Positions 2,459 to 55,122 of a stretch of DNA of 64,000 nt are shown in pieces. The notes below the pieces were generated by a model. The model made no database searches and had not been told where the DNA came from. It saw only the letters and a list, made by a program, of their open reading frames with translations. The DNA lies in the NCBI GenBank assembly GCA_965240325.2, contig OZ251230.1:744001-808000 (forward strand), given 5' to 3'. The position numbers and the translations under genes were made by a program. Origin of the DNA: Rebecca billardiae RCC1528. Lineage: Eukaryota; Protista; Haptophyta. The stretch's first letter is position 1, and each line of letters begins with the position of its first letter.

Positions 2459-5400
2459 ATGGCTGACGGCGTGGACGCGTCCCCGCTCGCGGAGCTCGCC
2501 AAGCTGTGGGGGGAAGGCGGCGTGGCGGCGCTGCTCGGGGCGAGCGAGGTCAGCTTTACTCGCAACGCGGCTGTCTCCCAGGGCGTGCCGTGGCAGGGCG
2601 TGCTCGAGCTGCTCCTCACGTCCACACGCCTCGAGACACTCAACCTCCGGTGTGCGCAGAGCGGTGGGGCGGGCAGGTGGCGGCGCCACGTGGCGCGAGC
2701 AGACGGAGGCTTGTGGGCGCACAATGCCGTGCATGTGGCTTGTCCATCGGCACGTGTCAGCGCCGCTCCGGGCGCCGCGCCGCCGCCGCCGCGTACGCCG
2801 CACGCGGTGCTCACAGCGGCACGTGAGCGCGAGCACACAGGCGGTGCACGCGCACCGATGCGTGCGCGCGTGACGGGGTCGCGGGCGCTCGAGGCGCGCG
2901 CATGCATGCTGCATCGCGTACGCCATCGCACATGCCGCTCAGTCGCGCCCCGCCCCGCGCCCTCCCCTGCGCGCAGTGCCACCGACGTGGGTGACGAGGG
3001 TGCCACGCAGCTCGGCGCCGCCCTCGCGTCGGGCAAGACGCGCCTGCGGGTGCTGGGCCTCGAGTGAGCGCTGGGGTGGGCACTCGGCGCGGCGCGCGGC
3101 GCGCGGACGGTGGGTGGCGGGGGAGGAGGGTGGGTGGCTTGCGTTGTCGTGGGCATCGATGCGCGCGAGCCCGGGCTGCCGCGCGCGCGCCGCGCCGAGC
3201 GCCGCGCCGCCGCGGCCGCGCGCGCCGCACGCTGCGGCGGCGGCGCGCACACGCGAGCGCGCGCGCGTCGGCGCACGCGCGCCGATGCGTGCGCGCGTGA
3301 CGGGGGCGCGGAAGCTTGCGGCGCGCGTATGCATGCTGCATCACGTGCGCCATCGCACACGCCGCTCAGCCGCGCCCCGCCCCGCGCCCTCCCCTGCGTG
3401 CAGTAACACCGGCGTGGGTGACGAGGGTGCCACGCAGCTCGGCGCCGCCCTCGCGTCGGGCAAGACGCGCCTGCGGGTGCTGGACCTCGGGTGAGCGCTG
3501 GGGTGGGCACTCGGCGCGGCGCGCGGCGCGTGGACGGTGGGCGGCGGGGGAGGAGGGTGGGTGGCGCGCATCGTCACGGGCATCGATGCACGCGAGGCCG
3601 GGCTACCGCGCGCGCGCCGCGCCGAGCGCGGCGCCGCCACCACCGCGCGCGCCACACGCGGCGGCGGCGGCGGCGCGCACACGCGAGCGCGCGCGCATCG
3701 GCACACGCGCGCCGATGCGTGCGCGCGTGACGGGGGCGCGGGCGCTCTAGGCTAGGCGCGCGCATGCATGATGCATCGCGTGCGCCGTCGCACGCGCTGC
3801 TCAGCCGCGCCCCGCCGCGCGCCCTCCCCTGCGCGCAGTCACACCGGCGTGGGTGACGAGGGTGCCACGCAGCTCGGCGCCGCCCTCGCGTCGGGCAAGA
3901 CGCGCCTGCGGGTGCTGAACCTCAGGTGAGCGCTGGGGTGGGCACTCGGCGCGGCGCGCGGCGCGTGGACGGTGGGTGGCGAAGGAGGATGCTGGGTGGC
4001 GTGCATTGTCACGGGCATCGATGCGCACGAGCCCGAGCTGCCGCGCGCGCCCCGCGCCGAGCGCCGTGCCCCCGCCGCCGCGCGCGCCGCACGCGGCGGC
4101 GGCGGCGGCGCGCACACGCGAGCGCGCGCGCATCGGCGCACGCGCGCCGATGCGTGCGCGCGTGACGGGGGCGCGGGAGCTTGCGGCGCGCATGCGTGCT
4201 GCATCGCGTGTGCTATCGCACACGCCGCTCAGCCGCGCCCCGCCCCGCGCCCTCCCCTGCGCGCAGTGAGACCGGCGTGGGTGACGAGGGTGCCACGCAG
4301 CTCGGCGCCGCCCTCGCGTCGGGCAAGACGCGCCTGCGGAAGCTGTACCTCAGGTGAGCGCTGGGGTGGGCACTCGGCGCGGCGCGCGGCGCGTGGACGG
4401 TGGGTGGCGGGGGAGGATGCTGGGTGGCGTGCATTGTCACGGGCATCGATGCGCACGAGCCCGGGCTGCCGCGCGCGCCCCGCGCCGAGCGCCGTGCTGC
4501 CGCCGCCGCGCGCGCCGCACGCAGCGGCGGCGGCGCACACACGCGAGCGCGCGCGCATAGGCGCACGCGCGCCGATGCGTGCGCGCGTGACGGGGGCGCG
4601 GGAGCTTGCGGCGCGCATGCGTGCTGCATCGCGTGTGCTATCGCACACGCCGCTCAGCCGCGCCCCGCCCCGCGCCCTCCCCTGCGCGCAGTCACACCGG
4701 CGTGGGTGACGAGGGTGCCACGCAGCTCGGCGCCGCCCTCGCGTCGGGCAAGACGCGCCTGCGGGTGCTGTACCTCTAGTGAGCGCTGGGGTGGGCACTC
4801 GGCGCGGCGCGCGGCGCGTGGACGGTGGGTGGCGGGGGAGGATGCTGGGTGGCGTGCATTGTCACGGGCATCGATGCGCACGAGCCCGGGCTGCCGCGCG
4901 CGCCCCGCGCCGAGCGCCGTGCTGCCGCCGCCGCGCGCGCCGCACGCAGCGGCGGCGGCGCACACACGCGAGCGCGCGCGCATAGGCGCACGCGCGCCGA
5001 TGCGTGCGCGCGTGACGGGGGCGCGGGAGCTTGCGGCGCGCATGCGTGCTGCATCGCGTGTGCTATCGCACACGCCGCTCAGCCGCGCCCCGCCCCGCGC
5101 CCTCCCCTGCGCGCAGTGAGACCGGCGTGGGTGACGAGGGTGCCACGCAGCTCGGCGCCGCCCTCGCGTCGGGCAAGACGCGCCTGCGGGAGCTGTACCT
5201 CTAGTGAGCGCTGGGGTGGGAACTCGGCGCGGCGCGCGGCGCGTGGAATGTGGGCGGCGGGGGAGGAGGGTGGGTGGCTTGCGTTGTCGTGGGCATCGAT
5301 GCGCGCGAGCGCGGGCTGCCGCGCGCGCGCCGCGCCGAGCGCCACGCCGCCGCCACCGCGCGCGCCGCACGCTGCGGCGGCGGCGGCGCGCACACGCGAG

Positions 5401-8400
5401 CGCGCGCGCATCGGCACACGCGCGCTGATGCGTGCGCGCGTGACGGGGGGCGCGGGAGCTTGCGGCGCGCGCATGGATGCTACGTCGCGTGCGCCATCGC
5501 ACACGCCGCTCAGCCGCGCTCCGCCCCGCGCCCTCCCCTGCGCGCAGTTTCTGCCGCGGCGTGGGTGACGAGGGTGCCACGCAGCTCGGCGCCGCCCTCG
5601 CGTCGGGCAAGACGCGCCTGCGGGAGCTGCACCTCGGGTGAGCGCTGGGGTGGGCACTCGGCGCGGCGCGCGGCGCGTGGACGGTGGGCGGCGGGGGAGG
5701 AGGGTGGGTGGCGTGCATGGTCACGGGCATCGATGCGCGCGAGCCCGGGCTACCGCGCGCGCGCCGCGCCGAGCGCCGCGCCGCCGCCGCCGCGCGCGCC
5801 GCACGCGGCGGCAGCGGCTGCGCGCACACGCGAGCGCGCGCGCATCGCCACACGCGCGCCGATGCGTGCGCGCGTGACGGGGGCGCGGGAGCTTGCGGCG
5901 CGCACGTGTGCATGCTGCATCACGTGCCGCGGCGCGCACGTTTGCATGCTGCATGACGTGCGCCATGGCACACGCCGCTCAGCCGCGCCCCGCCCCGCGC
6001 CCTCCCCTGCGCGCAGTCACACCAGCGTGGGTGACGAGGGTGCCACGCAGCTCGGCGCCGCCCTCGCGTCGGGCAAGACGCGCCTGCGGGTGCTGGACCT
6101 CCGGTGAGCGCTGGGGTGGGCACTCGGCGCGGCGCGCGGCGCGTGGACTGTGGGCGGCGAGGGAGGAGGGTGGGTGGTGCACATCGTCACGGGCATCGAT
6201 GCGCTCGAGCCCGGGCCGCCGCCGCGCGCGCCGCGCCGAGCGCCGCGCCGCCGCCGCCGCGCGCGCCGCACGCTGCGGCAGCGGCGCGCACACGCGAGCG
6301 CGCGCGCATCGGCACATGCGCGCCGATGCGTGCGCGCGTGACGTGGGCGCGGAAGCTTGCGGCGCGCGCGTGCATGCTGCATCGCGTGCGCCATCGCACA
6401 CGCCGCTCAGTCGCGCCCCGCCCCACGCCCTCCCCTGCGCGCAGTGGCACCCCCGCGTCTAACAAGGTCAAGGCACGCGTTGATGAGGCCGTTAACAAGG
6501 CGCGGCTGCAGCAGGAGCCACCCAGGTGAAAGGGGTGGGGGGGATCCCACAACGCGCCACGCCCGTGCATGCGCGGGGCGCGCGGGAAAGGGGGCAGCGG
6601 GTTGCGGTGATTGGCCGCGCTATGCGCGGCGCACCCCGGTTCTGCCACCGCACGCCCCTGGCACGCACTTCGCCACCGCTCACGTGCGCGCCTCGCCCAC
6701 CGCCTGCCTGCGTGTGCAGTGATGACTCTGCTGATGACTCTGCTGACGACTCGGCCTCTGGCGACGAGGCGGGGGCGGAGGCAGCGGAGGAGGCGCAGGC
6801 CGCGCTCGGGGCGCTCGCGGAGCGGCGGCGCGCTGCGGACGCCGCGCGCGCCGCGCTCGGCGCCGAGCAGGCGGCCATCCGCGCCGCCCTCGGCCGCGGC
6901 GGCGTGGACGAGGCGCGGCTGGCGCGGCGCGACGCGCGCCGTGCCGAGCTGGGCGCCGCGCTCGACGCGCTCGGCGCGTGCGCGCTCGACGCGCACGCGG
7001 ACTCGCAGCAGCGCGCGGCGGCGCTGCGTCGCGAGGCGCGCGCGTTGCGCGCGGCGCTCGAGCGCGCGGGCACGCCAGAGCAGCCGCGCGCGCCGGCCGG
7101 CGACGGGTCCGCTCCGGCGCCCCTGCCGCCGTCTCGCGCGCTCGAGCGCGCGGTGGGCGCGGCGGTGCGCGCGCACGACGCCGCAGCGCAGCCCTCCGCC
7201 GCGGGCAGTGGCGGCGCGGCGCTCGCTGCCGCGTGGGCGGAGGTGGCGCGCCAGGCCATCGCCCTCGCGGCGCGCGGCGCGTACGCCGACGCGGACGACG
7301 GCGCGTGCGCCTCGGCGTGGGCGCTCGCCATGCCCGGCCTGTGCGACGCGGCGCGCGCTGCCGCCACAGGCGGCGGTGGCCTGACCGACGCGGCGCGTGC
7401 GCGCGCGGCCGCGTGCGACGAGCTCGCCGCAGTGGCCGAGCGCGCGCGCACGATCGCGCGCGAGGCGGAGGCGGAGGCGCGCGAGCTCCGCGCGCTGCCG
7501 TCCGCCGAGCGCGCGCACGGCGCGCACGAGCTGCGCGAGCGCGAGGAGGCGTGCAGGGCGGCGGCGCGCGCACTGCGCTACGCCCGCCTCGCTCTTGAAG
7601 ATGCGCAGGACGACGGCGGCGACGTGGACGGCGCACAGCGCGCGCTCGTCGACGCGCAGCGGCGCGCGCAGCGCACGCAGCGCGCGCGCGAGCGCTCGCT
7701 CGACCGCCTGTACGAGCTGGCGGGCGGGCCGTTCCCCGAGCTGCCCGCCATGCTGCCCGAGGCGTTCGACGGCGCGGGCGCGCTGCCCGCGGGCGCGCGG
7801 CCCGCGTGGCTGCACGGCCGCACGCTCGCGCAGTACGAGCCGTGCGAGTGGCCCGACGGCGCGGCGCCCGGCCGCGCGCGGCACGAGGTGCTGCTGCGCG
7901 CGTTCGCGGGCGAGCGCGTCGTGCTCAAGGTGTACCCGCTGGCGAGCGACACGGAGCGCCGGCGGCTCGGGCGCGAGGTGGAGTTTGCGCGGGCGCACGC
8001 GCACCCACACCTCGCGCGCGTGGCGGGCGTCTTTGTCGACGAGCCGCGCGGCGCGCGCTGCGCGCTCGTGCAGACGCCGCTCTACTCGGGCGGCACGCTG
8101 CGCGGCTGGCTCGAGCGCGACGAGGCGGTGATGGCCTTGCCGCCCGAGGCGGTGCGCGGCGGCGCGGCGGGCGCGCGAATGCTCGAGCCGGCGCACGCGC
8201 GCGTCGCGCCCGTGCGCGTGCGCGCGCTGCGGCAGCTGCTGGGCGCGCTCGCGCACCTGCACGCGCGCGGCGCGGTGCACGGCGACGTGAAGCTCGAGAA
8301 CGCGTTCGTGCAGCTGCCGGGCGACGACGCGGCCGAGCGGCCGCTCGGCGCGGCCGAGCCGTTCCGCGTGCTGCTCGGCGACTTTGACCTGGCGCGCGTG

Positions 8401-9567
8401 GAGGAGGCGCTGCAGCACGCGGCTGGCGGCGGCGTGCCGAGCGCGACGACGCGCGCGGGCGCGGGCACCGAGGGCCACATGGCGCCCGAGCTGCTCGTGC
8501 CGGGCGCGCGCGCGAGCGCGGCGTCGGACGTGTTCGCGTTCGGCGTGTGCGTGCTGCGCGCGCTCGCGGCCGACGAGCCGACGCGCGCCGCGCTCGTGGG
8601 CTCGCTCGAGGGCGCGCGCGCCGCGGCGGCTGCGCTGGGCGAGCCGCTCGTCGTGGCCGCGCTGGCGGACGCGCCGGGCGCGCGGCCGAGCGCGGCGCAG
8701 CTCGAGGGCGCGGCGCTGTGGGCGGCGAGCGACGAGGCGCTGCGCGCGGCCGAGGCCGAGCGCGAGGCGGCGGCCGCGAGCGCGCGCGCCGCGCTGCGCA
8801 CGTGCGCGGTGTGCTTGGACGAGGAGGTGCCGCCGGACGAGTGCGCCGAGTGCGCGGGCGGCGGGCACGCGGTGTGCTCGCTCTGCCTCTCCATGCACGT
8901 GCAGGTGTGCGCGCAGCCCGACGGCGGCGGCGGCGCGACGCTCGACGCGGACGGGCGCGTGCCGTGCGTCGAGGTGGGCAGCGGCTGCGCGCACGCGTAC
9001 CTGGACGGCGAGCTCGCGCGCCGCACGACCGCCGCGGCGTTCGGCGCGTACTGGCGCGCGCGCGAGCAGCACGCCGAGGCGCGCGGCGAGGAGCGCGCGG
9101 CCGAGCGCGCGCGCGCCGAGGCCGAGCGCCTCGCGGCGCTCAGCGCGGCCGAGCGCGTGCGCGAGCAGCGGCGCGCGCACATCATCGATCATATCCTCAC
9201 GCTCAAGTGCCCGCGCTGCGGCATGGCGTTTGCCGAGTGGCTCGACGGCGCGCGCGGCTTCGACGGCTGCTGCGCGCTGCGCTGCGCGCGCGATCGGTGC
9301 GGCTGCCACTTCTGCGCGTACTGCCTCGCCGACTGCGGCGCCGACGCGCACCCGCACGTGCGCGGCTGCGAGCACGGCAACGGCACGTACTTTGCGCAGC
9401 GCGGCGAGTTTGAGGCGGCGCAGCGCGCGCGGCGCGAGCGCGCGCTGCGCAGCTACCTCGCCGCCGAGGCGGGCGCGGACGACGCGGCGCGCCGAGCGAT
9501 CGTCGCGTCCGTCGAGCGCGAGCTGCGCGACCTCCGCATCGACCCAGACGCACTCGCGCGCGAGTGA
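2459..9567 (+). CDS. LRR - coiled coil - protein kinase - RING/RBR-like protein, copy 1 (8 LRR exons)
   Basis: Predicted exons, all GT-AG and phase 2: 2459-2649; LRR exons 2977-3063, 3404-3490, 3839-3925, 4267-4353, 4692-4778, 5117-5203, 5548-5637, 6017-6103; cap 6445-6525; terminal exon 6720-9567. The terminal exon has VVLK, HGDVKLEN, DFD, GTEGHMAPE, SDVFAFG, a C3HC4 RING and CPRC..GCCALRC..FCAYC. The frame stays open after splicing. Confidence 0.85.
2650..6444 (+). repeat. Tandem ~430-bp intron + LRR-exon cassettes, array 1
   Basis: Repeated unit GTGAGCGCTGGGGTGGG...GCTCAGCCGCGCCCCGCCCCGCGCCCTCCCCTGCGCGCAG followed by an 87-nt exon encoding xTxVGDEGATQLGAALASGKTRLRxLxLx. Confidence 0.95.
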
Positions 9568-9806
9568 CCGATGGGCCCCTGGGGCGTCGGCTGCGCGCAG
9601 TCAGGCGCTGGCGAGGACTAGGGCACGAGCTGAGCGCGATGATGCTCGGCGGGGGCCACGTGCGCGGATGCACCGCCACGCTGAACACGCTGGTGCCGAA
9701 TCGCACGTGGCGGCTGGGGGCGCTCACCCAGCTCCGCGCCGTCGAGAGCTCCGAGCCGGAGCTACGCCGGCCGCTGAGGGGCGTCGGGGAGAGGGATGAG
9801 ACGGAG

Positions 9807-11474
9807 GCGCGTGCTGCACTGACGCGTCGGCTGGCAGCAGCTCAGCCGCGCGCTCCAGTGAATGGCGCACGGTGAAGGAGTTGGCGACCTTCTCCTTCGT
9901 GCTGACGAAATCGCACAGCTTGCCGAGGAGGATCCCCGCCCACTTGTGCGCGTACCCGCTCGACGCGTCCACGGCGACGGCGGCGTCGGCGAGCTCGATC
10001 CCCGATCGGATCAGCTCCTCGCGCCGCGCCGCGTCATCGGCCGCCTGCTCGGACAGCTCGTAGCGCGCGCGCGCACGCCGCCAGCGGCTATGAGCTTATC
10101 AGTACTATATAAGTACTCGTCTTATAAGTACCTCGTAATACTGATAAGCGCTGTCGTCCACGGCGCGATCGCTCGCGGCGAGCCCTTGTGTTCGGGCGTC
10201 GAGCGGCCTTGACGCTGGGGCGTGCAGGGACGGGCGTGGGCACCATCCGGCGCCATCATTGCCGGCCGAGGGCGGTTTTTGGCGCGCTGCTCAGAAGCGG
10301 TACAGTTTAAGGCGTGATTTACGCCATCCAACACTGCACAAAGACACCGCCACAAAACAGACCGGCGCAGACAGGTGAGGGGCGCGTTGCCGCACCTCAT
10401 CGAGGTGGCCATTGCAGCAAGCGGCCGCCCCGCGCTCGGAGGCACGCGCTCGAGAGCGCGCTCTGACACCACACAGTACTGTGACAGCAGCCGGATTTCA
10501 GCATGGCGGTCGCCTCGGCTGGCGGAGCTGTCGCCCACGATGGCGTGCACGAGTCAAAACACTAGCGGATTTCGCGGCATGGTGCTGTGAGCCAGCCCTG
10601 CCGAAGGTAGGAGCCGCCCTGTGAACGCGCAGAGCCGTCGTCAGCGACCCCGTTGTGAGCGTGTGCACGCGTGCATTGCACCCGCGGCGACCGTACTTAT
10701 GATGGACGTTATCAGTATAAGTTATCAGTACGCGTACGCGTGTGCGCGCGCGCGCGCGCGACGCCACCACACTGTGACACTCACTCACAGGACCACACCG
10801 GGTGACGTCGGGTTGGGAAGAGGTCCATGCCCTTCCTGGGTCCATTTGCGACGACGCAAGCGTTCGTAGCTTCATTCATGTGATCATCATTCTAGCGCGT
10901 CTGCAGGAGTAAACGCTATCAGTACCGCGTACTGATTGTACTGATAAGGAGCTCATCATGGTCGCCAGAGGAGCTCGACGTCGTCAGCCGCGGGTGCAGC
11001 GGAGGCCTCCTGCTCGAGCAGTGCGTACAGCGCTTCGTATTCGCCCGCGGCGTGCATCTCGTCCGCGCGCGAGAAGCGCGCTGGGCTCTCTTCGAGCGGC
11101 GGTGCCATCTGCCCACTCGGCCTCTCGAGGCTGGTCGCACTCCCGGCGTCAGGTGAGGCCGAGCCGTCCAGTGCAGCCCGCTCTGCAGCCTCGCCCGGGG
11201 CGGCGGCATCGGGTTTGCGGCGGCGATAGAGCCGCAGCGGGGAAAGGCGCGAGAGAACCCGACGTACGCGGCCAGGCCGCGCTGAAGCTTCCTCCTCACG
11301 TTCCTCCTCGCAGGACGAATCAACCATCATGGCAACACACGTGCGTGCAGGCGAAGGCGGTAGGAGCTTGCATCTGGGCGCGAGGGTCGGAGATGAGCCT
11401 GGCCAGTGCGTGCGAGGAATGTGGGCACCACCAAAGGGCACGGCGGCGAGCACTAGCACGACGGCCAACCGCAT
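9807..11474 (-). pseudogene. RMD1-like copy 2, 3'-truncated and interrupted by a MITE
   Basis: Near-identical to 1518-2310, lacks the 3' end of the gene and is split by the insertion at 10085-10962. Confidence 0.8.
10085..10962. mobile_element. Non-autonomous DNA transposon (MITE-like), 878 bp
   Basis: Absent from the other RMD1 copies. Flanked by direct repeat CGCCAG (10079-10084 and 10963-10968). Imperfect inverted ends ATGAGC..TTATCAGTAC, with the TATCAGTA motif repeated internally. Confidence 0.7.
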
Positions 11475-11650
11475 TACGCGGCCGTCCACGGCCGCGGGAG
11501 ATTGGGCAGCCATCAAGACGACTCGCCCTCGTCACGAAAAGCTGAGACGAAAATCGAAAGGAGCGGGGAGCCTCGCATCCGGACAAGCACGCACCGGACT
11601 CCGGAAGGCATCGGCCATCGCCGCTCTCGGAGGCCGCCCAGCACGAGAGC

Positions 11651-19898: not shown

Positions 19899-19938
19899 TA
19901 CGCGGCCGTCCACGGCCGCGGGAGATTGGGCAGCCATC

Positions 19939-44940: not shown

Positions 44941-45687
44941 CGCGCTCCAGTGAACGGCGCACGGTGAACGAGTTGGCGACCTTCTCCTTCGTGATGACGA
45001 TTAAATCGCTCAGCTTGCCGAGGAGGATCCCCGCCCACTTGTGCGCGTACCCGCTCGACGCGCCCACGGCGACCGCAGCGTCGGCGAGCTCGATCCCCGA
45101 TCGGATCAGCTCCTCGCGCCGCGCCGCGTCCTCGGCCGCCTGCTTGGACAGCTCGTAGCGCGCGCGCGCACGCCGCCAGAGGAGCTCGACGTCGTCAGCC
45201 GCGGGTGCAGCGGAGGCCTCCTGCTCGAGCAGTGCGTACAGCGCTTCGTATTCGCCCGCGGCGTGCATCTCGTCCGCGCGCGAGAAGCGCGCTGGGCTCT
45301 CTTCGAGGGGCGGTGCCATCTGCCCACTCGGCCTCTCGAGGCTGGTCGCACTCCCGGCGTCAGGTGAGGCCGAGCCGTCCAGTGCAGCCCGCGCTGCAGC
45401 CTCGCCCGGGGCGGTAGCATCGGGTTTGCGGCGGCGATAGAGCCGCAGCGGGGAAAGGCGCGAGAGAACCCGACGTACGCGGCCAGGCGGCGCTGAAGCT
45501 CCCTCCTCACGTTCCTCCTCGCAGGACGAATCCGCCGCATCATGGCAACACACGTGCGTGCAGGCGAAGGCGGCAGGAGCTTGCATCCGGGCGCGAGGGT
45601 CGGAGATGAGCCTGGCCAGTGCGTGCGAGGAATGTGGGCACCACCAAAGGGCACGGCGGCGATTACTAGCACGACGGCCAACCGCAT
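44941..45687 (-). pseudogene. RMD1-like copy 5, 3'-truncated with a 5' frameshift
   Basis: Nearly identical to copy 4 but without the MITE. Confidence 0.8.
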
Positions 45688-45864
45688 TACGCGGCCGTCC
45701 ACCGCCGCGGGAGATTGGGCAGCCATCAAGACGACTCGCCCTCGTCACGAAAAGGCAAAAGCTGAGACGAAATGAAAGGCTCGCATCCGGACCAGCAACC
45801 ACCGGAACTCCGGAAGGCATCGGCCACCAGCCTCGCCACTCTCGGAGGCGCCCAGTGCGACAGC

Positions 45865-48800
45865 ATGGCTGATGGCGTGGACGCGTCCCCGCTCGCGGAG
45901 CTCGCCAAGCTGTGGGGGAAAGGCGACGTGGCGGCGCTGCTCGAGGCGAGCGAGGTCAGCCTTGATGGCAACGCGGCTGTCTCTCAGGGCGTGCCGTGGC
46001 AGGGCGTGCTCCAGCTGCTCCTCACGTCCACACGCCTTGAGACACTCAACCTCTGGTGTGCGCAGAGCGGTGGGGCGGGCAGGTGGCGGCGCCACGTGGC
46101 GCGTGCAGACGGAGGCGTATGGGCACACACTGCCCTGCATGTGGCTGGCCCATCGGCACGTGTCAGCGCCGCTCCGGGTGCCGCGCCGCCGCCGCCGTGT
46201 ACGCCGCACGCGCTGCTCACAGCGGCACGTGCGCGCGAGCACACAGGCGGTGCACGCGCGGAGATGCGTGCGCGCGTGACGGGCGGGCGGGAGCTTGAGG
46301 CGCGCGCATGCATGCTGCATCGCGTGCGCCATCGCACACGCCGCTCAGCCGCGCCCCGCCCCGCGCCCTCCCCTGCGCGCAGTGAGACCGGCGTGGGTGA
46401 CGAGGGTGCCACGCAGCTCGGCGCCGCCCTCGCGTCGGGCAAGACGCGCCTGCGGGAGCTGGACCTCAGGTGAGCGCTGGGGTGGGCACTCCGCGCGGCG
46501 CGCGGCGCGTGGACGTTGGGTGGCGGGGGGGGAGGCTGGGTGGTGCGCATCGTCACGGGCATCGATGCGCACGAGCCCGGGCCGCCGCGCGCGCGCCGCG
46601 CCGAGCGCCGCGCCGCCGCCGCCGCGCGCGCCCGCGCGGCGGCGGCGGCGGCGCGCACACGCAAGCGCGCGCGCATCGGCGCACGCGCGCCGATGCGTGC
46701 GCGCGTGACGGGGGCGCGGGAGCTTGCGGCGCGCGCATGCATGCTGCCTCACGTGTACCATCGCACACGCCGCTCAGCCGCGCCCCGCCCCGCGCCCTCC
46801 CCTGCGCGCAGTGAGACCGGCGTGGGTGACGAGGGTGCCACGCAGCTCGGCGCCGCCCTCGCGTCGGGCAAGACGCGCCTGCGGGTGCTGGACCTCTGGT
46901 GAGCGCTGGGGTGGGCACTCGGCGCGGCGCGCGGCGCGTGGACGTTGGGTGTCGGGGGGGGAGGCTGGGTGGCGCGCGTTGTCGCGGGCATCGATGCGCA
47001 CGAGCCCGGGCTGCCGCGCGCGCGCCGCGCCGAGCGCCGTGCCCCCGCGGCCGCGCGCGCCGCCTTCGGCGGCGGCGGCGGCGCGCACACGCGAGCGCGC
47101 GCGCATCGGCGCACGCGCGCCGATGCGTGCGCGCGTGACGGGGGCGCGGGAGCGTGCGGCGCGCGTATGCATGCTGCATCGCGTGCGCCATCGCACACGC
47201 CGCTCAGCCGCGCCCCGCCCCGCGCCCTCCCCTGCGCGCAGTTTCACCGGCGTGGGTGACGAGGGTGCCACGCAGCTCGGCGCCGCCCTCGCGTCGGGCA
47301 AGACGCGCCTGCGGAAGCTGAACCTCGGGTGAGCGCTGGGGTGGGCACTCGGCGCGGCGCGCGGCGCGTGGACGGTGGGTGGCGGGGGGGGGGGCTGGGT
47401 GGCGCGCGTTGTCGCGGGCATCGATGCGCACGAGCCCGGGCTGCCGCGCGCGCGCCGCGCCGAGCGCCGTGCCGCCGCCGCCGCGCGCGCCGCACGCTGT
47501 GGCGGCGGCGCGCACACGCGAGCGCGCGCGCATCGGCGCACGCGCGCCGATGCGTGCGCGCGTGACGGGCGGGCGGGAGCTTGCGGCGCGCGCATGCATG
47601 CTGCATCGCGCGCGCCATCGCACACGCCGCTCAGCCGCGCTCCGCCCCGCGCCCTCCCCTGCGCGCAGTCTCACCGGCGTGGGTGACGAGGGTGCCACGC
47701 AGCTCGGCGCCGCCCTCGCGTCGGGCAAGACGCGCCTGCGGAAGCTGAACCTCGGGTGAGCGCTGGGGTGGGCACTCGGCGCGGCGCGCGGCGCGTGGAC
47801 GGTGGGTGGCGGGGGGGGGGGCTGGGTGGCGCGCGTTGTCGCGGGCATCGATGCGCACGAGCCCGGGCTGCCGCGCGCGCGCCGCGCCGAGCGCCGTGCC
47901 GCCGCGGCCGCGCGCGCCGCCTTCGGCGGCGGCGGCGGCGCGCACACGCGAGCGCGCGCGCATCGGCGCACGCGCGCCGATGCGTGCGCGCGTGACGGGG
48001 GCGCGGGAGCGTGCGGCGCGCGTATGCATGCTGCATCGCGTGCGCCATCGCACACGCCGCTCAGCCGCGCCCCGCCCCGCGCCCTCCCCTGCGCGCAGTT
48101 TCACCGGCGTGGGTGACGAGGGTGCCACGCAGCTCGGCGCCGCCCTCGCGTCGGGCAAGACGCGCCTGCGGGAGCTGGGCCTCTTGTGAGCGCTGGGGTG
48201 GGCACTCGGCGCGGCGCGCGGCGCGTGGACGGTGGGCGGCGGGGGAGGAGGGTGGTTGGCGTGCATCGTCACGGGCATCGATGCGCTCGAGCCCGGGCCG
48301 CCGCCGCGCGCGCCGCGCCGAGCGCCGCGCCGCCGCCGCCGCGCACGCCGCACGCTGCGGCGGCGGCACGCACACGCGAGCGCGCGCGCATCGGCGCACG
48401 CGCGCCGATGCGTGCGCGCGTGACGGGCGGGCGGGAGCTTGCGGCGCGCGCATGCATGCTGCATGGCGCGCGCCATCGCACACGCCGCTCAGCCGCGCTC
48501 CGCCCCGCGCTCTGCCCTGCGCGCAGTTGCACCGGCGTGGGTGACGAGGGTGCCACGCAGCTCGGCGCCGCCCTCGCGTCGGGCAAGACGCGCCTGCGGG
48601 TGCTGGGCCTCAGGTGAGCGCTGGGGTGGGCACTCGGCGCGGCGCGTGGTGCGTGGACGGTGGGCGGCGGGGGAGGAGGGTGGGTTGCGTGCGTTGTCAC
48701 GGGCATCGATGCGCGCGAGCCCGGGCCACCACGCGCGCCCCGCGCCGAGCGCCGCGCCGTCGCCGCCGCGCGCGCCGCACGCTGCGGCAGTGGTCGCGCG

Positions 48801-51800
48801 CACACGCGAGCGCACACGCATCGGCGCACGCGCGCCGATGCGTGTGCGCGTGACGGGGTCGCGGGCGCTCGAGGCGCGCGCATGCATGCTGCATCGCGTG
48901 CGCCATTGCACACGCCGCTCAGCCGCGCCCCGCCCCGCGCCCTCCCCTGCGCGCAGTGCCACCCGCGTGGGTGACGAGGGTGCCACGCAGCTCGGCGCCG
49001 CCCTCGCGTCGGGCAAGACGCGCCTGCGGGCGCTGCACCTCTAGTGAGCGCTGGGGTGGGCACTCGGCGCGGCGTGCGGCGCGTGGACGGTGGGTGGCGG
49101 GGGAGGAGGGTGGTTGGCGTGCATCGTCACGGGCATCGATGCGCTCGAGCCCGGGCCGCCGCCGCGCGCGCCGCGCCGAGCGCCGCGCCGCCGCCGCCGC
49201 GCACGCCGCACGCTGCGGCGGCGGCACGCACACGCGAGCGCGCGCGCATCGGCGCACGCGCGCCGATGCGTGCGCGCGTGACGGGCGGGCGGGAGCTTGC
49301 GGCGCGCGCATGCATGCTGCATGGCGCGCGCCATCGCACACGCCGCTCAGCCGCGCCCCGCCCCGCGCCCTCCCCTGCGCGCAGTGACACCCACGTGGGT
49401 GACGAGGGTGCCACGCAGCTCGGCGCCGCCCTCGCGTCGGGCAAGACGCGCCTGCGGGTGCTGGGCCTCAGGTGAGCGCTGGGGTGGGCACTCGGCGCGG
49501 CGCGTGGTGCGTGGATGTTGGACGGCGGGGGAGGAGGGTGGGTGACGCGCATCGTCACGGGCATCGATGCGCGCGAGCCCGGGCTGCCGCGCGCGCCCCG
49601 CGCCGAGCGCCGCGCCGCCGCCGCCGAGCGGGCCGCACGCTGCGGCAGCGGCGGCGCGCACACGCGAGCGCGCGCGCATCGGCGCACGCGCGCCGATGCG
49701 TGCGCGCGAGACGGGGGTGCTGGAGCTTGCGGCGCGTGCATGCATGCTGCATCGCGTGTGCCATCGCACACGCCGCTCAGCCGCGCCCCGCCCCGCGCCC
49801 TCCCCTGCGCGCAGTGACACCCGCGTGGGTGACGAGGGTGCCACGCAGCTCGGCGCCGCCCTCGCGTCGGGCAAGACGCGCCTGCGGGAGCTGTACCTCT
49901 GGTGAGCGCTGGGGTGGGCACTCGGCGCGGCGCGCGGTGCGTGGACGGTGGGCGGCGGGGGAGGAGGGTGGGTTGCGTGCGTTGTCACGGGCATCGATGC
50001 GCGCGAGCCCGGGCCACCACGCGCGCCCCGCGCCGAGCGCCGCGCCGTCGCCGCCGCGCGCGCCGCACGCTGCGGCAGTGGTCGCGCGCACACGCGAGCG
50101 CACACGCATCGGCGCACGCGCGCCGATGCGTGTGCGCGTGACGGGGTCGCGGGCGCTCGAGGCGCGCGCATGCATGCTGCATCGCGTGCGCCATTGCACA
50201 CGCCGCTCAGCCGCGCCCCGCCCCGCGCCCTCCCCTGCGCGCAGTCGCACCGGCGTGGGTGACGAGGGTGCCACGCAGCTCGGCGCCGCCCTCGCGTCGG
50301 GCAAGACGCGCCTGCGGGTGCTGAGCCTCCAGTGAGCGCTGGGGTGGGCACTCGGCGCGGCGTGCGGCGCGTGGACGGTGGGTGGCGGGGGAGGAGGGTG
50401 GGTGGCGCACAGCACCATAGGCATCGATGCGCGCGAGCCCGGGCGGCCGCGCGCGCGCCGCGCCGAGCGCGGCGCCGCCACCACCGCGCACGGCGCACGC
50501 TGCGGCAGCGGCGGCGCGCACACGCGAGCGCGCGCGCATCGGCGCACGCGCGCCGATGAGTGCGCGCGTGTCGGGGGCGCGGGAGCTTGCGGCGCGCACG
50601 TTTGCATGCTGCATCACGTGCGCCATCGCACACGCCGCTCAGCCGCGCCCCGCCCCGCGCCCTCCCCTGCGCGCAGTCGGACCCGCGTGGGTGACGAGGG
50701 TGCCACGCAGCTCGGCGCCGCCCTCGCGTCGGGCAAGACGCGCCTGCGGGTGCTGAACCTCTTGTGAGCGCTGGGGTGGGCACTCGGCGCGGCGCGCGGC
50801 GCGTGGACGGTGGGCGGCGGGGGAGGAGGCTGGGTGGCGATCATCGTCACGGGCATCGATGCGCACGAGCCCGGGCCGCCGCCGCGCGCGCCGCGCCGAG
50901 CGCCGCGCCGCCGCCGCCGCGCGCGCCGCACGCTGCGGCGGCGGCGGCACGCACACGCGAGCGCGCGCGCATCGGCGCACGCGCGCCGATGCGTGCGCGC
51001 GTGACGGGCGGGCGGGAGCTTGCGGCGCGCGCATGCATGCTGCATCGCGCGCGCCATCGCACACGCCGCTCAGCCGCGCTCCGCCCCGCGCCCTCCCCTG
51101 CGCGCAGTCTCACCGGCGTGGGTGACGAGGGTGCCACGCAGCTCGGCGCCGCCCTCGCGTCGGGCAAGACGCGCCTGCGGAAGCTGGACCTCGAGTGAGC
51201 GCTGGGGTGGGCACTCGGCGCGGCGCGTGGTGCGTGGATGATGGACGGCGGGGGAGGAGGCTGGGTGACGCGCATCGTCACGGGCATCGATGCGCGCGAG
51301 CCCGGGCTGCCGCGCGCGCCCCGCGCCGAGCGCCGCGCCGCCGCCGCCGAGCGGGCCGCACGCTGCGGCAGCGGCGGCGCGCACACGCGAGCGCGCGCGC
51401 ATCGGCGCACGCGCGCCGATGCGTGCGCGCATGACGGGGGCGCGGGAGCTTGCGGCGCGCGCATGCATGCTGCCTCACGTGCGCCATCGCACACGCCGCT
51501 CAGCCGCGCCCCGCCCCGCGCCCTCCCCTGCGCGCAGTCGCACCGGCGTGGGTGACGAGGGTGCCACGCAGCTCGGCGCCGCCCTCGCGTCGGGCAAGAC
51601 GCGCCTGCGGGAGCTGCGCCTCGGGTGAGCGCTGGGGTGGGCACTCGGCGCGGCGCGCGGCGCGTGGACGGTGGGCGGCGGGGGAGGAGGCTGGGTGGCG
51701 ATCATCGTCACGGGCATCGATGCGCACGAGCCCGGGCTACCGCGCGCGCGCCGCGCCGAGCGCCGCGCCGCCGCGGCCGCGCGCGCCGCACGCTGCGGCA

Positions 51801-54800
51801 GCGGCGGCGCGCACACGCGAGCGCGCGCGCATCGGCGCACGCGCGCCGATGCGTGCGCGCGTGACGGGGGCGCGGGCGCTTGCGGCGCGCGCATGGATGC
51901 TGCATCGCGTGCGCCATCGCACACGCCGCTCAGCCGCGCCCCGCCCCGCGCCCTCCTCTGCGCGCAGTTACACCCCCGCGTCTGACGAGGTCAAGGAACG
52001 CGTCAATCAGGCCCTGGAGGCGAACAGTGCTCGGCTGCAGCAGGAGCCACCCAGGTGCAAGGGGGGGGGGGGGGGCACAACGCGCCGCGCCCGTGCATGC
52101 GCGGGGCGGGCGGGAAAGGGGGCAGCGGCTGGCTGTGATTGGCCGCCCCATGCGCAACGCACCCCGGCTCTGCCACCGCACGCCCGTGGCACGCGCTTGG
52201 CCGCCGCTCACGTGCGCACCTCGCCCACCGCCTGCCTGCGCGCGCAGTGATGACTCTGCTGACGACTCTGCTGATGACTCTGCTGACGACTCTGCTGACG
52301 ACTCTGCTGACGACTCGGCCTCTGGCGACGAGGCGGAGGCGGAGGAGCCGGAGACCGCGCTCGAGGCGCTCGCGGAGCGGCGGCGCGCTGCGGACGCCGC
52401 GCGCGCCGCGCTCGGCGCCGAGCAGGCGGCCATCCGCGCCGCCCTCGGCCGCGGCGGCGTGGACGAGGCGCGGCTGGCGCGGCGCGACGCGCGCCGTGCC
52501 GAGCTGGGCGCCGCGCTCGAGGCGCTCGGCGCGTGCGCGCTCGACGCGCACGCGGACTCGCAGCAGCGCGCGGCGGCGCTGCGTCGCGAGGCGCGCGCGT
52601 TGCGCGCGGCGCTCGAGCGCGCGGGCACGCCACAGCAGCCGCGCGCGCCAGCGGGCGACGGGTCCGCTCCGGCGCCCCTGCCGCCGTCTCGCGCGCTCGA
52701 GCGCGCGGTGGGCGCGGCGGTGCGCGCGCACGACGGCGCAGCGCCGCCCTCCGCCGCGGGCGGTGGCGGCGCGGCGCTCGCTGCCGCGTGGGCGGAGGTC
52801 GCGCGCCAGGCCATCGCCCTCGCGGCGCGCGGCACGTACGCCGACGCGGACGACGGCGCGTGCGCCTCGGCGTGGGCGCTCGCCATGCCCGGCCTGTGCG
52901 ACGCGGCGCGCGCTGCCGCCACAGGCGGCGGTGGCCTGACCGACGCGGCGCGTGCGCGCGCGGCCGCGTGCGACGAGCTCGCCGCAGTGGCCGAGCGCGC
53001 GCGCACGATCGCGCGCGAGGCGGAGGCGGAGGCGCGCGAGCTCCGCGCGCTGCCGTCCGCCGAGCGCGCGCACGGCGCGCACGAGCTGCGCGAGCGCGAG
53101 GAGGCGTGCAGGGCGGCTGCGCGCGCGCTGCGCCTCGCGCGCCGCGCTCTAGAAGATGCTCAGGACGACGGCGGCGACGTGGACGGCGCACAGCGCGCGC
53201 TCGTCGACGCGCAGCGGCGCGCGCAGCGCACGCAGCGCGCGCGCGAGCGCTCGCTCGACCGCCTGTACGAGCTGGCGGGCGGGCCGTTCCCCGAGCTGCC
53301 CGCGATGCTGCCCGAGGCGTTCGACGGCGCGGGCGCGCTGCCCGCGGGCGCGCGGCCCGCGTGGCTGCACGGCCGCACGCTCGCGCAGTACGAGCCGTGC
53401 GAGTGGCCCGACGGCGCGGCGCCCGGCCGCGCGCGGCACGAGGTGCTGCTGCGCGCGTTCGCGGGCGAGCGCGTCGTGCTCAAGGTGTACCCGCTGGCGA
53501 GCGACACGGAGCGCCGGCTGCTCGGGCGCGAGGTGGAGTTTGCGCGGGCGCACGCGCACCCACACCTCGCGCGCGTGGCGGGCGTCTTTGTCGACGAGCC
53601 GCGCGGCGCGCGCTGCGCGCTCGTGCAGACGCCGCTCTACTCGGGCGGCACGCTGCGCGGCTGGCTCGAGCGCGACGAGGCGGCGGCGGGCTTGCCGCCC
53701 GAGGCGGTGCGCGGCGGCGCGCCGGGCGCGCGTATGCTCGAGCCGGCGCACGCGCGCGTCGCGCCCGTGCGCGTGCGCGCGCTGCGGCAGCTGCTGGGCG
53801 CGCTCGCGCACCTGCACGCGCGCGGCGCGGTGCACGGCGACGTGAAGCTCGAGAACGCGTTCGTGCAGCTGCCGGGCGACGACGCGGCGGAGCGGCCGCT
53901 CGGCGCGGCCGAGCCGTTCCGCATGCTGCTCGGCGACTTTGACCTGGCGCGCGTGGAGGAGGCGCTGCAGCACGCGGCTGGCGGCGGCGTGCCGAGCGCG
54001 ACGACGCGCGCGGGCGCGGGCACCGAGGGCCACATGGCGCCCGAGCTGCTCGTGCCCGGCGCGCGCGCGAGCGCGGCGTCGGACGTGTTCGCGTTCGGCG
54101 TGTGCGTGCTGCGCGCGCTCGCGGCCGACGAGCCGACGCGCGCCGCGCTCGTGGGCTCGCTCGAGGGCGCGCGCGCCGCGGCGGCTGCGCTGGGCGAGCC
54201 GCTCGTCGTGGCCGCGCTGTCGGACGCGCCGGGCGCGCGGCCGAGCGCGGCGCAGCTCGAGGGCGCGGCGCTGTGGGCGGCGAGCGACGAGGCGCTGCGC
54301 GCGGCCGAGGCCGAGCGCGAGGCGGCGGCCGCGAGCGCGCGCGCCGCGCTGCGCACGTGCGCGGTGTGCTTGGACGAGGAGGTGCCGCCGGACGAGTGCG
54401 CCGAGTGCGCGGGCGGCGGGCACGCGGTGTGCTCGCTCTGCCTCTCCATGCACGTGCAGGTGTGCGCGCAGCCCGACGGCGGCGGCGGCGCGGCGCTCGA
54501 CGCGGACGGGCGCGTGCCGTGCGTCGAGGCGGGCACTGGCTGCGCGCACGCGTACCTAGACGGCGAGCTCGCGCGCCGCACGACCGCCGCGGCGTTTGGC
54601 GCGTACTGGCGCGCGCGCGAGCAGCACGCCGAGGCGCGCGGCGAGGAGCGGGCGGCCGAGCGCGCGCGCGCCGAGGCCTTGCGCCTCGCGGCGCTCAGCG
54701 CGGCCGAGCGCGTGCGCGAGCAGCGGCGCGCGCACATCATCGATCATATCCTCACGCTCAAGTGCCCGCGCTGCGGCATGGCGTTTGCCGAGTGGCTCGA

Positions 54801-55122
54801 CGGCGCGCGCGGCTTCGACGGCTGCTGCGCGCTGCAGTGCGCGCGCGATCGGTGCGGCTGCCACTTCTGCGCCTACTGCCTCGCCGACTGCGGCGCCGAC
54901 GCGCACGCGCACGTGCGCGGCTGCGAGCACGGCAACGGCACGCACTTTGCGCAGCGCGGCGAGTTTGAGGCGGCGCAGCGCGCGCGGCGCGAGCGCGCGC
55001 TGCGCAGCTACCTCGCCGCCGAGGCGGGCGCGGACGACGCGGCGCGCCGAGCGATCGTCGCGTCCGTCGAGCGCGAGCTGCGCGACCTCCGCATCGACCC
55101 AGACGCACTCGCGCGCGAGTGA
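45865..55122 (+). CDS. LRR - kinase - RING/RBR-like protein, copy 5 (13 LRR exons)
   Basis: Exons 45865-46055; LRR exons start at 46383, 46812, 47242, 47669, 48099, 48527, 48957, 49385, 49815, 50245, 50677, 51108, 51538; cap 51968-52054; terminal 52248-55122. Confidence 0.85.
46056..51967 (+). repeat. Intron + LRR-exon cassettes, array 5
   Basis: Same ~430-bp unit, 13 exons. Confidence 0.95.

Follow-up and report, generated by a model that had tools for sequence, protein, structure and literature searches.

A 64,000-nt stretch of contig OZ251230.1 from the alga Rebecca billardiae RCC1528, referred to below as the window, contains five intact tandem genes on the forward strand that code for predicted proteins of 1154 to 1486 amino acid residues (Table 1). 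Each gene consists of a first exon, a series of short exons that encode a single leucine-rich repeat (LRR) each (the cassettes), a linker exon, and a long last exon. When these are joined, all five predicted models yield open frames with no internal stops, with GT-AG splice boundaries throughout and phase 2 at every intron; each of the 51 cassettes is flanked by AG and GT. An earlier note, made from the sequence alone, had counted five intact paralogues with 8, 4, 11, 15, and 13 LRR exons, and this count is borne out by the open spliced frames, by the tandem units of 425 to 430 nt that TRF places at positions 2760-6445, 11952-13890, 24473-29406, and 34844-51968, and by the conserved 57-nt exon core, which is present in the window in 51 copies on the forward strand and none on the reverse strand.

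Table 1. Features of the R. billardiae locus (positions are those of the window)
Feature	Position	Strand	Description	Basis
RMD1-3-like (TPR-like) gene	1273-2325	-	Intact, head-to-head with gene 1	Pfam RMD1-3, E 1e-21
Gene 1	2459-9567	+	11 exons, 1272 aa; exon 1, 2459-2649; 8 LRR cassettes within 2977-6103; linker exon, 6445-6525; last exon, 6720-9567	GT-AG phase-2 open-frame model
Gene 2	11651-17005	+	7 exons, 1154 aa; exon 1, 11651-11838; 4 LRR cassettes within 12166-13545; linker exon, 13890-13976; last exon, 14167-17005	Gene model; AlphaFold model of the last exon
Gene 3	24175-32550	+	14 exons, 1366 aa; exon 1, 24175-24362; 11 LRR cassettes within 24690-29062; linker exon, 29406-29492; last exon, 29685-32550	Gene model
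Gene 4	34543-44667	+	18 exons, 1486 aa; exon 1, 34543-34733; 15 LRR cassettes within 35061-41169; linker exon, 41513-41599; last exon, 41793-44667	Gene model
Gene 5	45865-55122	+	16 exons, 1427 aa; exon 1, 45865-46055; 13 LRR cassettes within 46383-51624; linker exon, 51968-52054; last exon, 52248-55122	Gene model
Adjacent pair of exon-plus-intron units, 425 nt each	4267-4691 and 4692-5116	+	6 differences, each at a hypervariable codon base
Long-helix (coiled-coil-like) region, gene 2	14201-15163	+	Last exon, aa 12-332	AlphaFold model m77cd1fc42fa3, helices H12-332, pLDDT 50-90
Protein kinase domain, gene 2	15320-16147	+	Generic kinase fold	Pfam Pkinase, E 9e-15; conserved residues in alignments
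Kinase motifs, gene 2	15359-15379; 15713-15739; 15815-15832; 15917-15928	+	β3 Lys; HGD-x-K-x-x-N; DFD; APE	Alignments
RING1 (C3HC4-type)	Gene 2, 16241-16426; gene 1, 8803-8988	+		Family profile vs parkin RING1, domain E 2.7e-5; Foldseek 1wim, TM 0.65
Rcat-like zinc module	Gene 2, 16640-16813; gene 1, 9202-9375	+		Profile alignment to parkin RING2/Rcat; Foldseek parkin Rcat 9c5e and HHARI catalytic domain 2m9y
RMD1-3-like copies without the 3' end	~9568-11650 (interrupted); 17006-19940 (interrupted); 32551-33715; 44668-45820; 55123-56229		One per 1.2-kb spacer	Pfam, E 1e-4 to 2e-5; spacer homology map

The description of the cassettes in that note as phase-2 exons separated by homogenized introns of ~340 nt holds as well: all 51 are in phase 2 at either end, and homology extends across the LRR introns, which are 338 to 379 nt long and ~90% identical. 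The exon length of 87 nt that it gave for every cassette is correct for 47 of them, but the remaining four (starting at positions 5548, 12166, 26833, and 37205) are 90 nt long. The last exon does not begin with the raw open reading frame but ~190 to 370 nt further downstream; in all five genes, it is preceded by an additional linker exon of 81 to 87 nt, which the earlier note does not mention. The last exons are 97 to 98% identical at the protein level, in line with the near-identical effector reported initially. Similarly, the predicted lack of transmembrane segments is supported by the Kyte-Doolittle maximum of 1.53 (in 19-aa windows), which is located within the kinase domain and is too low for a membrane helix. 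Scans of the window against Rfam and for tRNA genes returned no matches, and a homologue search with the intact RMD1-3-like open reading frame was equally negative. The DNA of the host alga is very GC-rich.

The cassettes encode 28- to 29-aa repeats of the ribonuclease inhibitor (RI)-like type, with the consensus LxxLxLxx(N/C/T)x(L/V)GDxGaxxLaxaL. Single LRR exons are not recognized by Pfam because the intron splits the repeat; exon 1 and the linker exon produced no Pfam matches either. When a 44-aa peptide spanning the exon junction was used for the searches, LRR_6 was the best Pfam family (E 0.006 for one repeat), and in the PDB, 1.5 repeats matched the porcine ribonuclease inhibitor best (E 7e-13), with human RI and the LRRs of NLRP5 coming next, which agrees with the repeat type assigned in the earlier note. 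The β-strand is divided by the intron, with the upstream exon supplying three of its hypervariable residues (see below) and the downstream exon the other two. With phase 2 at every junction and nearly all cassettes starting with T, the frame is kept in any cassette order. All four cassette length variants represent in-frame 3-nt changes. The exon-plus-intron units are mostly 425 to 435 nt long, with a single unit of 466 nt.

Sequence variation among the cassettes has a very uneven distribution. The 72 framework nucleotides are nearly invariant across the 51 copies, silent sites included, and the diversity is concentrated at positions 1 and 2 of five codons in the LxxLxLxx strand, resulting in ten or eleven variable bases per repeat. 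Nucleotide diversity amounts to 0.52 at these two positions of the hypervariable codons, compared with 0.005 at the 72 framework bases and 0.0016 at framework third positions; in the introns, it reaches 0.12 in the centers and 0.035 in the 50 nt adjoining the exons. Exon diversity is 25 times below that of the intron centers. The hypervariable positions line up with the x positions of the LxxLxLxxN motif in the ribonuclease inhibitor. The third base is fixed for each hypervariable codon position (NNC, NNT, or NNG), so that stop codons are impossible at four of the five. To connect the 44 alleles of these codons, at least 38 amino-acid-changing steps and a single silent one are required. By comparison, the effector exons of genes 4 and 5 differ by 23 amino-acid-changing and 20 silent substitutions, a contrast with the hypervariable codons that is significant in the Fisher test (p 2e-6). 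These diversity figures and step counts at the predicted concave-face codons argue for diversification of the predicted receptors, as had been suggested for this locus.

The same pattern is seen in pairwise comparisons of individual units. All six differences between the two adjacent units of gene 1 listed in Table 1 fall on the 12 hypervariable bases (p ~5e-10). Units that have 0 or 1 differences over the ~340-nt intron may still differ in 6 or 7 of 11 hypervariable bases, all of which are located within 1 to 14 nt of the splice sites. Approximately 38 of the 46 strand combinations occur only once, and there are unit-specific differences in the introns as well. Apart from gained or lost cassettes, genes 4 and 5 are collinear, and in gene 4, the cassette-8 unit is found again at cassette 11, where positions 38068-38499 equal positions 39360-39791, including an identical 345-nt intron. 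In genes 4 and 5, several cassettes that arose by recent duplication are identical in their hypervariable codons. The introns fold more stably than shuffled sequences (z, -2.8) and contain a conserved palindrome. Strong diversifying selection combined with intron homogenization would explain these cassette data. Since the whole exon-plus-intron unit is tandemly duplicated, there is no need to invoke an 'introner' origin of the introns.

The constant part of these proteins is encoded in the last exon, which specifies ~330 residues of long helices, a non-RD protein kinase, and a C-terminal RING1-helix-Rcat module. In gene 2, the helical region, which had no matches in Pfam, is preceded by an acidic linker rich in Ser and Asp. 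The kinase domain, proposed earlier for each paralogue, is recognized by Pfam in all five last exons (Pkinase, E ~1e-14) and showed a generic kinase fold in Foldseek. Alignments revealed that the β3 Lys, αC Glu, HxD-x-K-x-x-N, DFD, and APE motifs are invariant or nearly so, with the HxD motif reading HGD, which makes this a non-RD kinase. However, the glycine-rich GxGxxG loop is degenerate (AFAGE, with only one Gly), and the Pfam alignments begin at profile position 24, which makes the kinase activity uncertain. No NB-ARC or NACHT NTPase domain was detected by Pfam in any exon, and no ROC-COR GTPase was found, the only Pfam matches in the last exon being Pkinase and a weak RING.

The C-terminal module looks like a predicted RBR-type ubiquitin ligase that lacks the IBR domain. 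The RING1 and Rcat-like elements that the earlier note had assigned to the effector are supported by profile and Foldseek matches to parkin and HHARI: the family profile covers RING1 and Rcat of parkin with a whole-sequence E value of 1e-6, and the structural model of the module (pLDDT 93) has PDB matches that are nearly all RBR ligases (RNF216, HHARI, parkin, HOIP, and HOIL-1). The Cys/His ligands of RING1 are invariant in 50 homologues. An invariant Cys, encoded at positions 9268-9270 in gene 1, is placed by the profile alignment opposite the catalytic Cys of parkin and represents the candidate catalytic residue. Pfam IBR_1 matched 11 of the 50 homologues, and none of the Pfam RBR families reached the threshold on the protein from the window itself. 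The central IBR is absent: residues 78-142 of the model are helical, forming a hairpin of ~70 residues that connects RING1 to Rcat, and there are no conserved Cys or His residues in between. Thus, the putative ligase shares with parkin, HHARI/ARIH1, RNF216, and HOIP the order of RING1 and an Rcat-type zinc module, with a Cys aligned to the catalytic one, but has the helical hairpin in place of the IBR and is not a canonical RBR.

This uncurated module is widespread, being represented in at least 1874 sequence clusters, where it sits mostly C-terminally to kinases and SF1 helicases. Among 45 long carriers of the module that were sampled, the partners included kinases and SF1 helicases (one of the latter also matching the Pfam ZNFX1 domain), as well as ubiquitin, CCCH zinc fingers, RRM, and ankyrin; none of the 45 had LRRs. 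The helical region, kinase, and RING1-Rcat are found together, at 34 to 51% identity, in several unnamed and functionally undescribed protist proteins, among them MMETSP transcript P0001, AlphaFold DB clusters A0A0M0JNM1 ('Kinase family protein') and A0A812MRB9, and the product of a metagenomic contig (L001). In the latter, a 44%-identical effector is combined with another N-terminal repeat sensor, seven near-identical WD40 repeats that are encoded without introns and occupy the place of the LRR exons of the R. billardiae genes. The replacement of LRRs by WD40 marks the effector as a reusable output for repeat sensors and strengthens the idea of a variable sensor on a constant effector. The view of the earlier note, which knew of no described family with this architecture, can be retained in part: given that the kinase and RING-Rcat half is already present, unnamed, in public databases, only its fusion with LRRs appears to be unrecorded. 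A literature search for the combination of LRR, kinase, and RBR found no relevant report, and the joining of this effector with an LRR array appears undescribed. A metagenome scan for relatives with long flanks retrieved mainly generic kinases, with the kinase-RING-Rcat combination on just three short contigs that had no usable upstream sequence, and neither the LRR cassette nor the E3 module was found in viral contigs.

The closest parallel to the cassette arrays is offered by the LRR-ROC-COR (ROCO) genes of brown algae (Ectocarpus and others), in which each LRR has an exon to itself (Zambounis et al. 2012, PMC3341825; Teng et al. 2024, PMC11378527). This comparison, already drawn in the earlier note, is an apt one, as the LRR exons of R. 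billardiae also hold a single repeat each, are symmetric in phase, and lie between homologous introns. The two families further share repeated exon-intron units, exon shuffling, tandem clustering, the signs of positive selection on concave-face residues, and the status of candidate cytosolic immune receptors. The brown-algal genes, however, have 24-aa repeats encoded in 72-nt exons and a ROC-COR GTPase, whereas those described here combine 29-aa RI-like repeats and 87-nt exons with a kinase and an RBR-like E3. In addition, the introns of the R. billardiae genes are free of inactivated or reverse-strand cassettes, the framework is essentially invariant, and only ten or eleven bases vary in each repeat.

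The LRR cassettes, invariant framework, and hypervariable concave-face residues are also reminiscent of lamprey variable lymphocyte receptors (VLRs). The assembly of VLRs is a somatic process that draws on non-coding donor cassettes lying beside an incomplete germline gene. In R. billardiae, in contrast, all five genes are complete, the cassettes are predicted spliced exons, and the window contains no donor cassettes; a VLR-like donor-cassette system was rejected due to the lack of such orphan copies. Recognition domains and ligases are combined in a single polypeptide in several proteins of animal cell-autonomous immunity and in bacterial effectors, including LRSAM1, TRIM5α/TRIM21, RNF213, ZNFX1, and the IpaH-type LRR-NEL ligases; LRSAM1 and IpaH use an LRR for recognition. 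None of these proteins is known to contain a kinase or a hypervariable sensor built from cassettes, and their ligase chemistry and domain families are different. Phosphorylation is known to regulate RBR ligases, as exemplified by PINK1 and parkin, an obvious analogy for a kinase that is fused upstream.

Taken together, these genes probably represent a family of cytosolic recognition proteins that is encoded in the germline, diversifies rapidly, and has a kinase and E3 output. An RI-like LRR horseshoe made of 4 to 15 cassette repeats plus the caps would bind the ligand on its concave face, where the five hypervariable residues of each β-strand form the predicted ligand-facing surface. In-register unequal crossing-over or gene conversion among the near-identical units could add, remove, and reorder the repeats, with diversifying selection likely retaining amino acid changes at the five codons and the rest being kept uniform. 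The acidic linker and the ~330-aa helices can be expected to connect the sensor to the constant kinase and IBR-less RBR-type output. Ligand binding might relieve autoinhibition or cause oligomerization via the helical region; the kinase might then phosphorylate the ligase module or its substrates, much like PINK1 does with parkin, except within one chain; and the ligase might ubiquitinate either the ligand held by the sensor or some downstream target. Such proteins would most likely serve in the surveillance of non-self, e.g., viruses or intracellular parasites of the alga, even though diversification of the concave face fits immunity, mating or allorecognition, and changing endogenous substrates equally well.

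That last point leaves room for a different reading, in which these proteins are single-chain E3 ligases akin to F-box-LRR proteins, LRSAM1, and IpaH, with no part in defense and with the LRRs serving as a receptor for endogenous substrates or as a mating/allorecognition determinant. Combining LRRs and an E3 in one chain is an established substrate-receptor logic, and many of the partners of the E3 module, such as ubiquitin, CCCH zinc fingers, RRM, and ankyrin, do not look immune. This reading still appears fairly unlikely: housekeeping substrate receptors are usually conserved, whereas here, amino acid replacements account for 38 of the 39 steps inferred at the binding face and almost every strand is unique, and the tandem birth-and-death with changes in cassette number is typical of fast-evolving recognition genes. 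Its allorecognition version is hard to exclude. It is highly improbable that the arrays are an assembly artifact or the genes dead repeats. Although ~90%-identical tandem repeats of 430 nt are hard to assemble, all five models are open with every splice site intact, all four length variants are in frame, the strand combinations and introns are largely unit specific, and the 25-fold contrast in diversity between exons and intron centers is predicted by selection for function but not by decay or misassembly.

Two further alternatives concern the source of the variation. One is diversity within an individual, caused by combinatorial skipping of cassettes or by mitotic/somatic rearrangement of the arrays that would lead to clonal variants. 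The symmetry of all 51 cassettes (phase 2 on both sides and 87 or 90 nt) means that any subset would splice in frame; alternative splicing has been reported for the one-LRR exons of brown-algal ROCO genes (PMC11378527), and the homogenized, stably folding introns with their palindrome are also compatible with this possibility. Nevertheless, it seems quite improbable, as all five genes are intact in their germline form and the window, unlike VLR loci, has no orphan or reverse-strand donor cassettes. The other is targeted mutation, i.e., site-directed hypermutation or templated micro-conversion creating the hypervariable bases in place of selection on ordinary mutations. It would fit the units with near-identical introns and strongly diverged hypervariable bases close to the splice sites, as well as the restriction of changes to the first two codon positions. 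However, substitutions of all types are present with no base-specific signature, and neither a template copy nor a reverse transcriptase accompanies the genes; the recent duplicates with identical hypervariable codons indicate that change is not obligatory. Such an origin is very unlikely, and DGR-like mechanisms were judged unlikely for the same reasons.

Viruses and parasites kill unicellular marine algae on a massive scale. These algae are not known to possess repertoires of NLRs and receptor kinases such as plants and animals have, and their recognition of these attackers is hardly understood. A germline-encoded family of diversifying receptors at this locus would be a concrete candidate for such recognition, with a sensor wired to two predicted enzymatic outputs. 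The sensor displays one of the cleanest diversification signatures met by the author, an invariant scaffold with ten or eleven variable bases per repeat, and the PINK1-parkin switch would have a natural single-chain counterpart in a kinase that directly precedes an RBR-type ligase in the same protein. That one effector exists with LRRs and with WD40 repeats shows that protists exchange the repeat sensors placed on a shared output, much as happens with NLRs in fungi, plants, and animals. An improbable extension of this idea envisages a genome-wide plug-in system, in which stop-proof, phase-locked LRR arrays with palindrome-bearing introns would be placed on several effectors (here, a kinase switching on an IBR-less RBR ligase in cis) and would be re-dealt, either in clonal lineages by unequal mitotic recombination or in RNA by exon skipping, to produce an individually variable receptor repertoire.

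Besides the five genes and the RMD1-3-like sequences (Table 1), the window contains a single reverse transcriptase (RT) open reading frame, located at positions 61670-63319 in a separate stretch downstream of gene 5.

Gene models for the cluster were built around a 57-nt conserved core of the LRR repeat, which is found in 51 copies on the + strand of the window, grouped 8, 4, 11, 15, and 13, the same counts of LRR exons that the earlier note had given. There are no copies on the − strand, and the core detected no orphan cassettes (one-LRR exons) beyond the genes on either strand of the window. Every core sits in a segment with an AG acceptor before it and a GTGAGCGC donor after it; 47 of these segments are 87 nt long and 4 are 90 nt, so the previously proposed uniform 87-nt exon holds for the former only. 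Each cassette group is preceded by exon 1 (188 to 191 nt, with an ATG start) and followed by a linker exon of 81 to 87 nt, which the earlier note had overlooked. The last exon measures 2.84 to 2.88 kb and does not comprise the whole raw open reading frame (ORF), as had been assumed, but starts at an AG acceptor 190 to 370 nt inside it. The spliced models of genes 1 to 5 encode 1272, 1154, 1366, 1486, and 1427 amino acids with zero internal stops, and all their introns are GT-AG and, as expected, in phase 2. In no 19-residue window of the proteins does hydrophobicity reach the level of a membrane helix, and the N terminus is unlike a signal peptide, in agreement with the earlier note; we read the five predicted proteins as cytosolic. 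The G+C content of the window ranges from 57 to 82% (2-kb windows).

Positions of features in and around the LRR-kinase-E3 gene cluster (window coordinates)
Feature	Position	Strand	Remarks
RMD1-3-like (TPR-like) gene, complete	1273-2325	−	Sole full copy; head-to-head with gene 1
RMD1-3-like copies without 3' end	9568-11650, 17006-19940, 32551-33715, 44668-45820, 55123-56229	−	
425-430 nt tandem array	2760-6445		Tandem Repeats Finder
425-430 nt tandem array	11952-13890		Tandem Repeats Finder
425-430 nt tandem array	24473-29406		Tandem Repeats Finder
425-430 nt tandem array	34844-51968		Tandem Repeats Finder; spans two genes
Adjacent units of gene 1	4267-4691, 4692-5116		425 nt each
LRR intron (example)	4354-4691		Palindrome near 4550-4590
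Acidic Ser/Asp linker (examples)	6720-6780, 41793-41880		12-nt microsatellite
Spacer insertions	10085-10962, 17756-19612, 19940-24170, 33546-34342		Lower G+C
58-nt and 64-nt tandem repeats	20492-20607, 22469-22798		In largest insertion
Reverse-transcriptase ORF, 549 aa	61670-63319	+	RVT_1, E = 1e-16; downstream of cluster

The LRRs are of the RI-like type, as originally proposed: a 44-residue peptide spanning one exon junction has porcine ribonuclease inhibitor as its best match in the PDB (E = 7e-13), with designed RI-type repeats, human RI, and NLRP5 next in rank, and the best Pfam family for the repeat is LRR_6. The exon boundary (slash) splits the β-strand, L-R-x3-L-x4-L-x5/x1-T-x2-V-G-D-E-G, with x3 to x5 encoded by the 3' end of the upstream exon and x1 and x2 by the 5' end of the next one. 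The x5 codon is itself split 2/1; its final base opens the following cassette and is T in 49 of the 51.

Across the 51 copies, mean pairwise diversity reaches 0.52 at the first and second bases of these five hypervariable codons (n = 10), compared with 0.005 at the 72 framework bases, 0.0016 at framework third positions (n = 24), 0.12 in intron centers, and ∼0.035 in the 50 nt of intron on either exon flank. Together the five positions have 44 codon alleles, and connecting these takes at least 39 mutational steps, 38 of them amino-acid-changing, whereas the last exons of genes 4 and 5 differ by 23 amino-acid-changing and 20 silent codons (Fisher P = 2e-6). The sharpest single result comes from two adjacent units (cassette plus intron) of gene 1: all 6 of their differences are hypervariable, with a probability under random placement of ∼5e-10, and the same pair compared across 512 nt shows 9 differences, again all hypervariable. 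Similarly, a comparison of cassettes 6 and 9 of gene 5, introns included, gives 15 differences in 517 bases, 14 of them hypervariable. Where two introns differ at 0 or 1 bases, divergence at the hypervariable bases is ∼100 times that of the intron; for average intron pairs the ratio is 5, because the hypervariable bases saturate near 0.5. The third base is fixed at each position (NNG at x3, NNC at x4 and x2, NNT at x5, and mostly NNC at x1), so that at four of the five positions stop codons are unreachable by first- or second-base changes. This stop-proof pattern may simply be inherited from a single ancestral codon in a genome of extreme GC3.

Intron distances are 0.05 to 0.10 within a gene and 0.075 to 0.10 between genes, so the cassettes are not grouped by gene. 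Genes 4 and 5 arose by recent duplication, with 99.6% identity between their upstream spacers and with mostly collinear cassettes, 15 in gene 4 versus 13 in gene 5. The cassette-8 unit of gene 4 (exon plus 345-nt intron) appears again, unaltered, at cassette 11, and gene 5 carries additional cassettes akin to neighboring ones. These gains argue that in-register unequal exchange alters copy number, the source of cassette-number change that had been suspected. The five-residue combination is unique in ∼38 of the 46 inter-exon strands; repeated combinations belong solely to gene 4/gene 5 orthologues or to the repeated unit within gene 4.

The last exons, described in the earlier note as near-identical, share 97 to 98% protein identity. 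Paralogues differ by ∼20 silent and ∼23 amino-acid-changing codons, which we take to indicate moderate purifying selection. An AlphaFold model of this effector (21-sequence alignment, mean pLDDT 71) has long helices at residues 12 to 332, a kinase fold at about 385 to 660 with three low-confidence inserts, and a C-terminal zinc module. The kinase matches Pfam Pkinase at ∼1e-14 and keeps the β3 Lys, αC Glu, HGD-V-K-x-x-N, DFD, and APE; the HGD motif bears out its non-RD assignment. The glycine-rich loop is degenerate, and no close kinase family was found, only weak matches to WNK, IRE1, and RIPK3 with a generic kinase fold. The acidic Ser/Asp linker at the start of the last exon is made of DDSA units, ∼2 to 5 depending on the paralogue.

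The C-terminal 264 residues were modeled at pLDDT 93 with a 50-sequence alignment supplied. Foldseek matches of this module in the PDB are almost entirely RBR ligases (RNF216, HHARI, parkin, HOIP, HOIL-1), with domain-level matches to RING1 1wim, parkin Rcat 9c5e, and the HHARI catalytic domain 2m9y. The family profile matches louse parkin (E = 1e-6) through both RING1 and RING2/Rcat, upholding the proposed RING1 and Rcat-like module, and aligns an invariant Cys with the parkin catalytic Cys. The spacing after this candidate catalytic Cys in the window's copy is C-x4-C-x4-C-x4-C-x2-C, the spacing of HHARI. Pfam IBR_1 matches 11 of the 50 homologues; in the alignment and model there is no IBR, the stretch from RING1 to Rcat being a helical hairpin without conserved zinc ligands. 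Since the IBR is missing, we call the module an RBR-like candidate E3 rather than a canonical RBR. Pfam has no curated entry for such an IBR-less RING1-Rcat module.

Used as the query of an exhaustive HMMER search (E up to 1e-3), the C-terminal 288 residues retrieved 1874 cluster representatives, in most of which the module is C-terminal, in carrier proteins of 113 to 3398 aa. The partners in 45 long carriers include kinases (22), SF1 helicases (13, one matching Pfam's ZNFX1 domain), ubiquitin (3), ankyrin repeats (2), and CCCH zinc fingers (2); Pfam found LRRs or WD40 repeats in none of the 45. AlphaFold DB gives the module only automatic names ("RING-type domain-containing protein," "Kinase family protein," "PERK14 protein"), and the nearest ESM Atlas clusters, most commonly from Haptophyta, have none. 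On metagenome contig L002 from ENA (1070-9009), an SF1 helicase gene (AAA_11/AAA_12) lies directly 5' of a gene for a 1251-aa protein with this module at its end; elsewhere, in different organisms, helicase and module are joined in a single polypeptide.

For the effector as a whole, the nearest relatives are an MMETSP transcript family (48 to 51% identity) and a protein encoded on L001, a 7.8-kb JGI metagenome contig of 71% G+C (44% over 712 aa). The latter is encoded by a single uninterrupted, intronless ORF (1116-5033): seven highly similar 45-residue WD40 repeats come first, and after them the helical region, the kinase (inserts included), RING1, and Rcat all recur. Two unrelated repeat sensors thus share one output module, which is the strongest comparative evidence for the earlier note's view of a "variable sensor, constant effector" system. 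The observation behind that reading was confirmed and sharpened, and the interpretation is plausible and partly supported: the split into sensor and effector stands, and beyond it we infer an immune role, a kinase-to-ligase switch, and ubiquitination of the bound ligand. Variation in the L001 repeats falls at a few positions per blade, reminiscent of the hypervariable WD40 repeats in NLR-like proteins of fungi.

The cassette principle is shared with the brown-algal LRR-ROC-COR genes: there too each LRR has its own exon, phases are symmetric, introns are repeated, exons are shuffled, and the concave face is under positive selection (PMC3341825). Later work on brown algae adds alternative splicing of the LRR exons (PMC11378527). 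The sensor design is therefore not new. What appears to be new is the effector combination, a kinase and an RBR-like ligase on an LRR array, which we could not find in the literature searched or among the 45 scanned carriers.

A 1.2-kb spacer lies ahead of every gene; these spacers are homologous to one another and carry, in antisense, the 5' three-quarters of the RMD1-3-like gene. The start codons of the complete RMD1-3-like gene and gene 1 are ∼130 nt apart. The partial copies place the duplication breakpoint inside the RMD1-3-like gene; the duplication unit runs from there to the stop of the LRR-kinase gene. The spacer copies retain open antisense ORFs that continue into the 3' end of the kinase gene before them. 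The four spacer insertions, whose ORFs have no match in Pfam, are probably transposon remnants; the largest is markedly rich in T over part of its length (AT skew −0.36 at 22-24 kb). The reverse-transcriptase ORF is probably a retroelement, with no link to the LRR genes seen, and the cluster appears limited to five genes within the window. A GC-rich palindrome, CATCGGCGC...GCGCCGATG, is well conserved with its flanks in every ∼340-nt LRR intron, and the fold of the entire intron is more stable than that of shuffled sequence (z = −2.8). The palindrome could aid splicing in very GC-rich introns or promote recombination.
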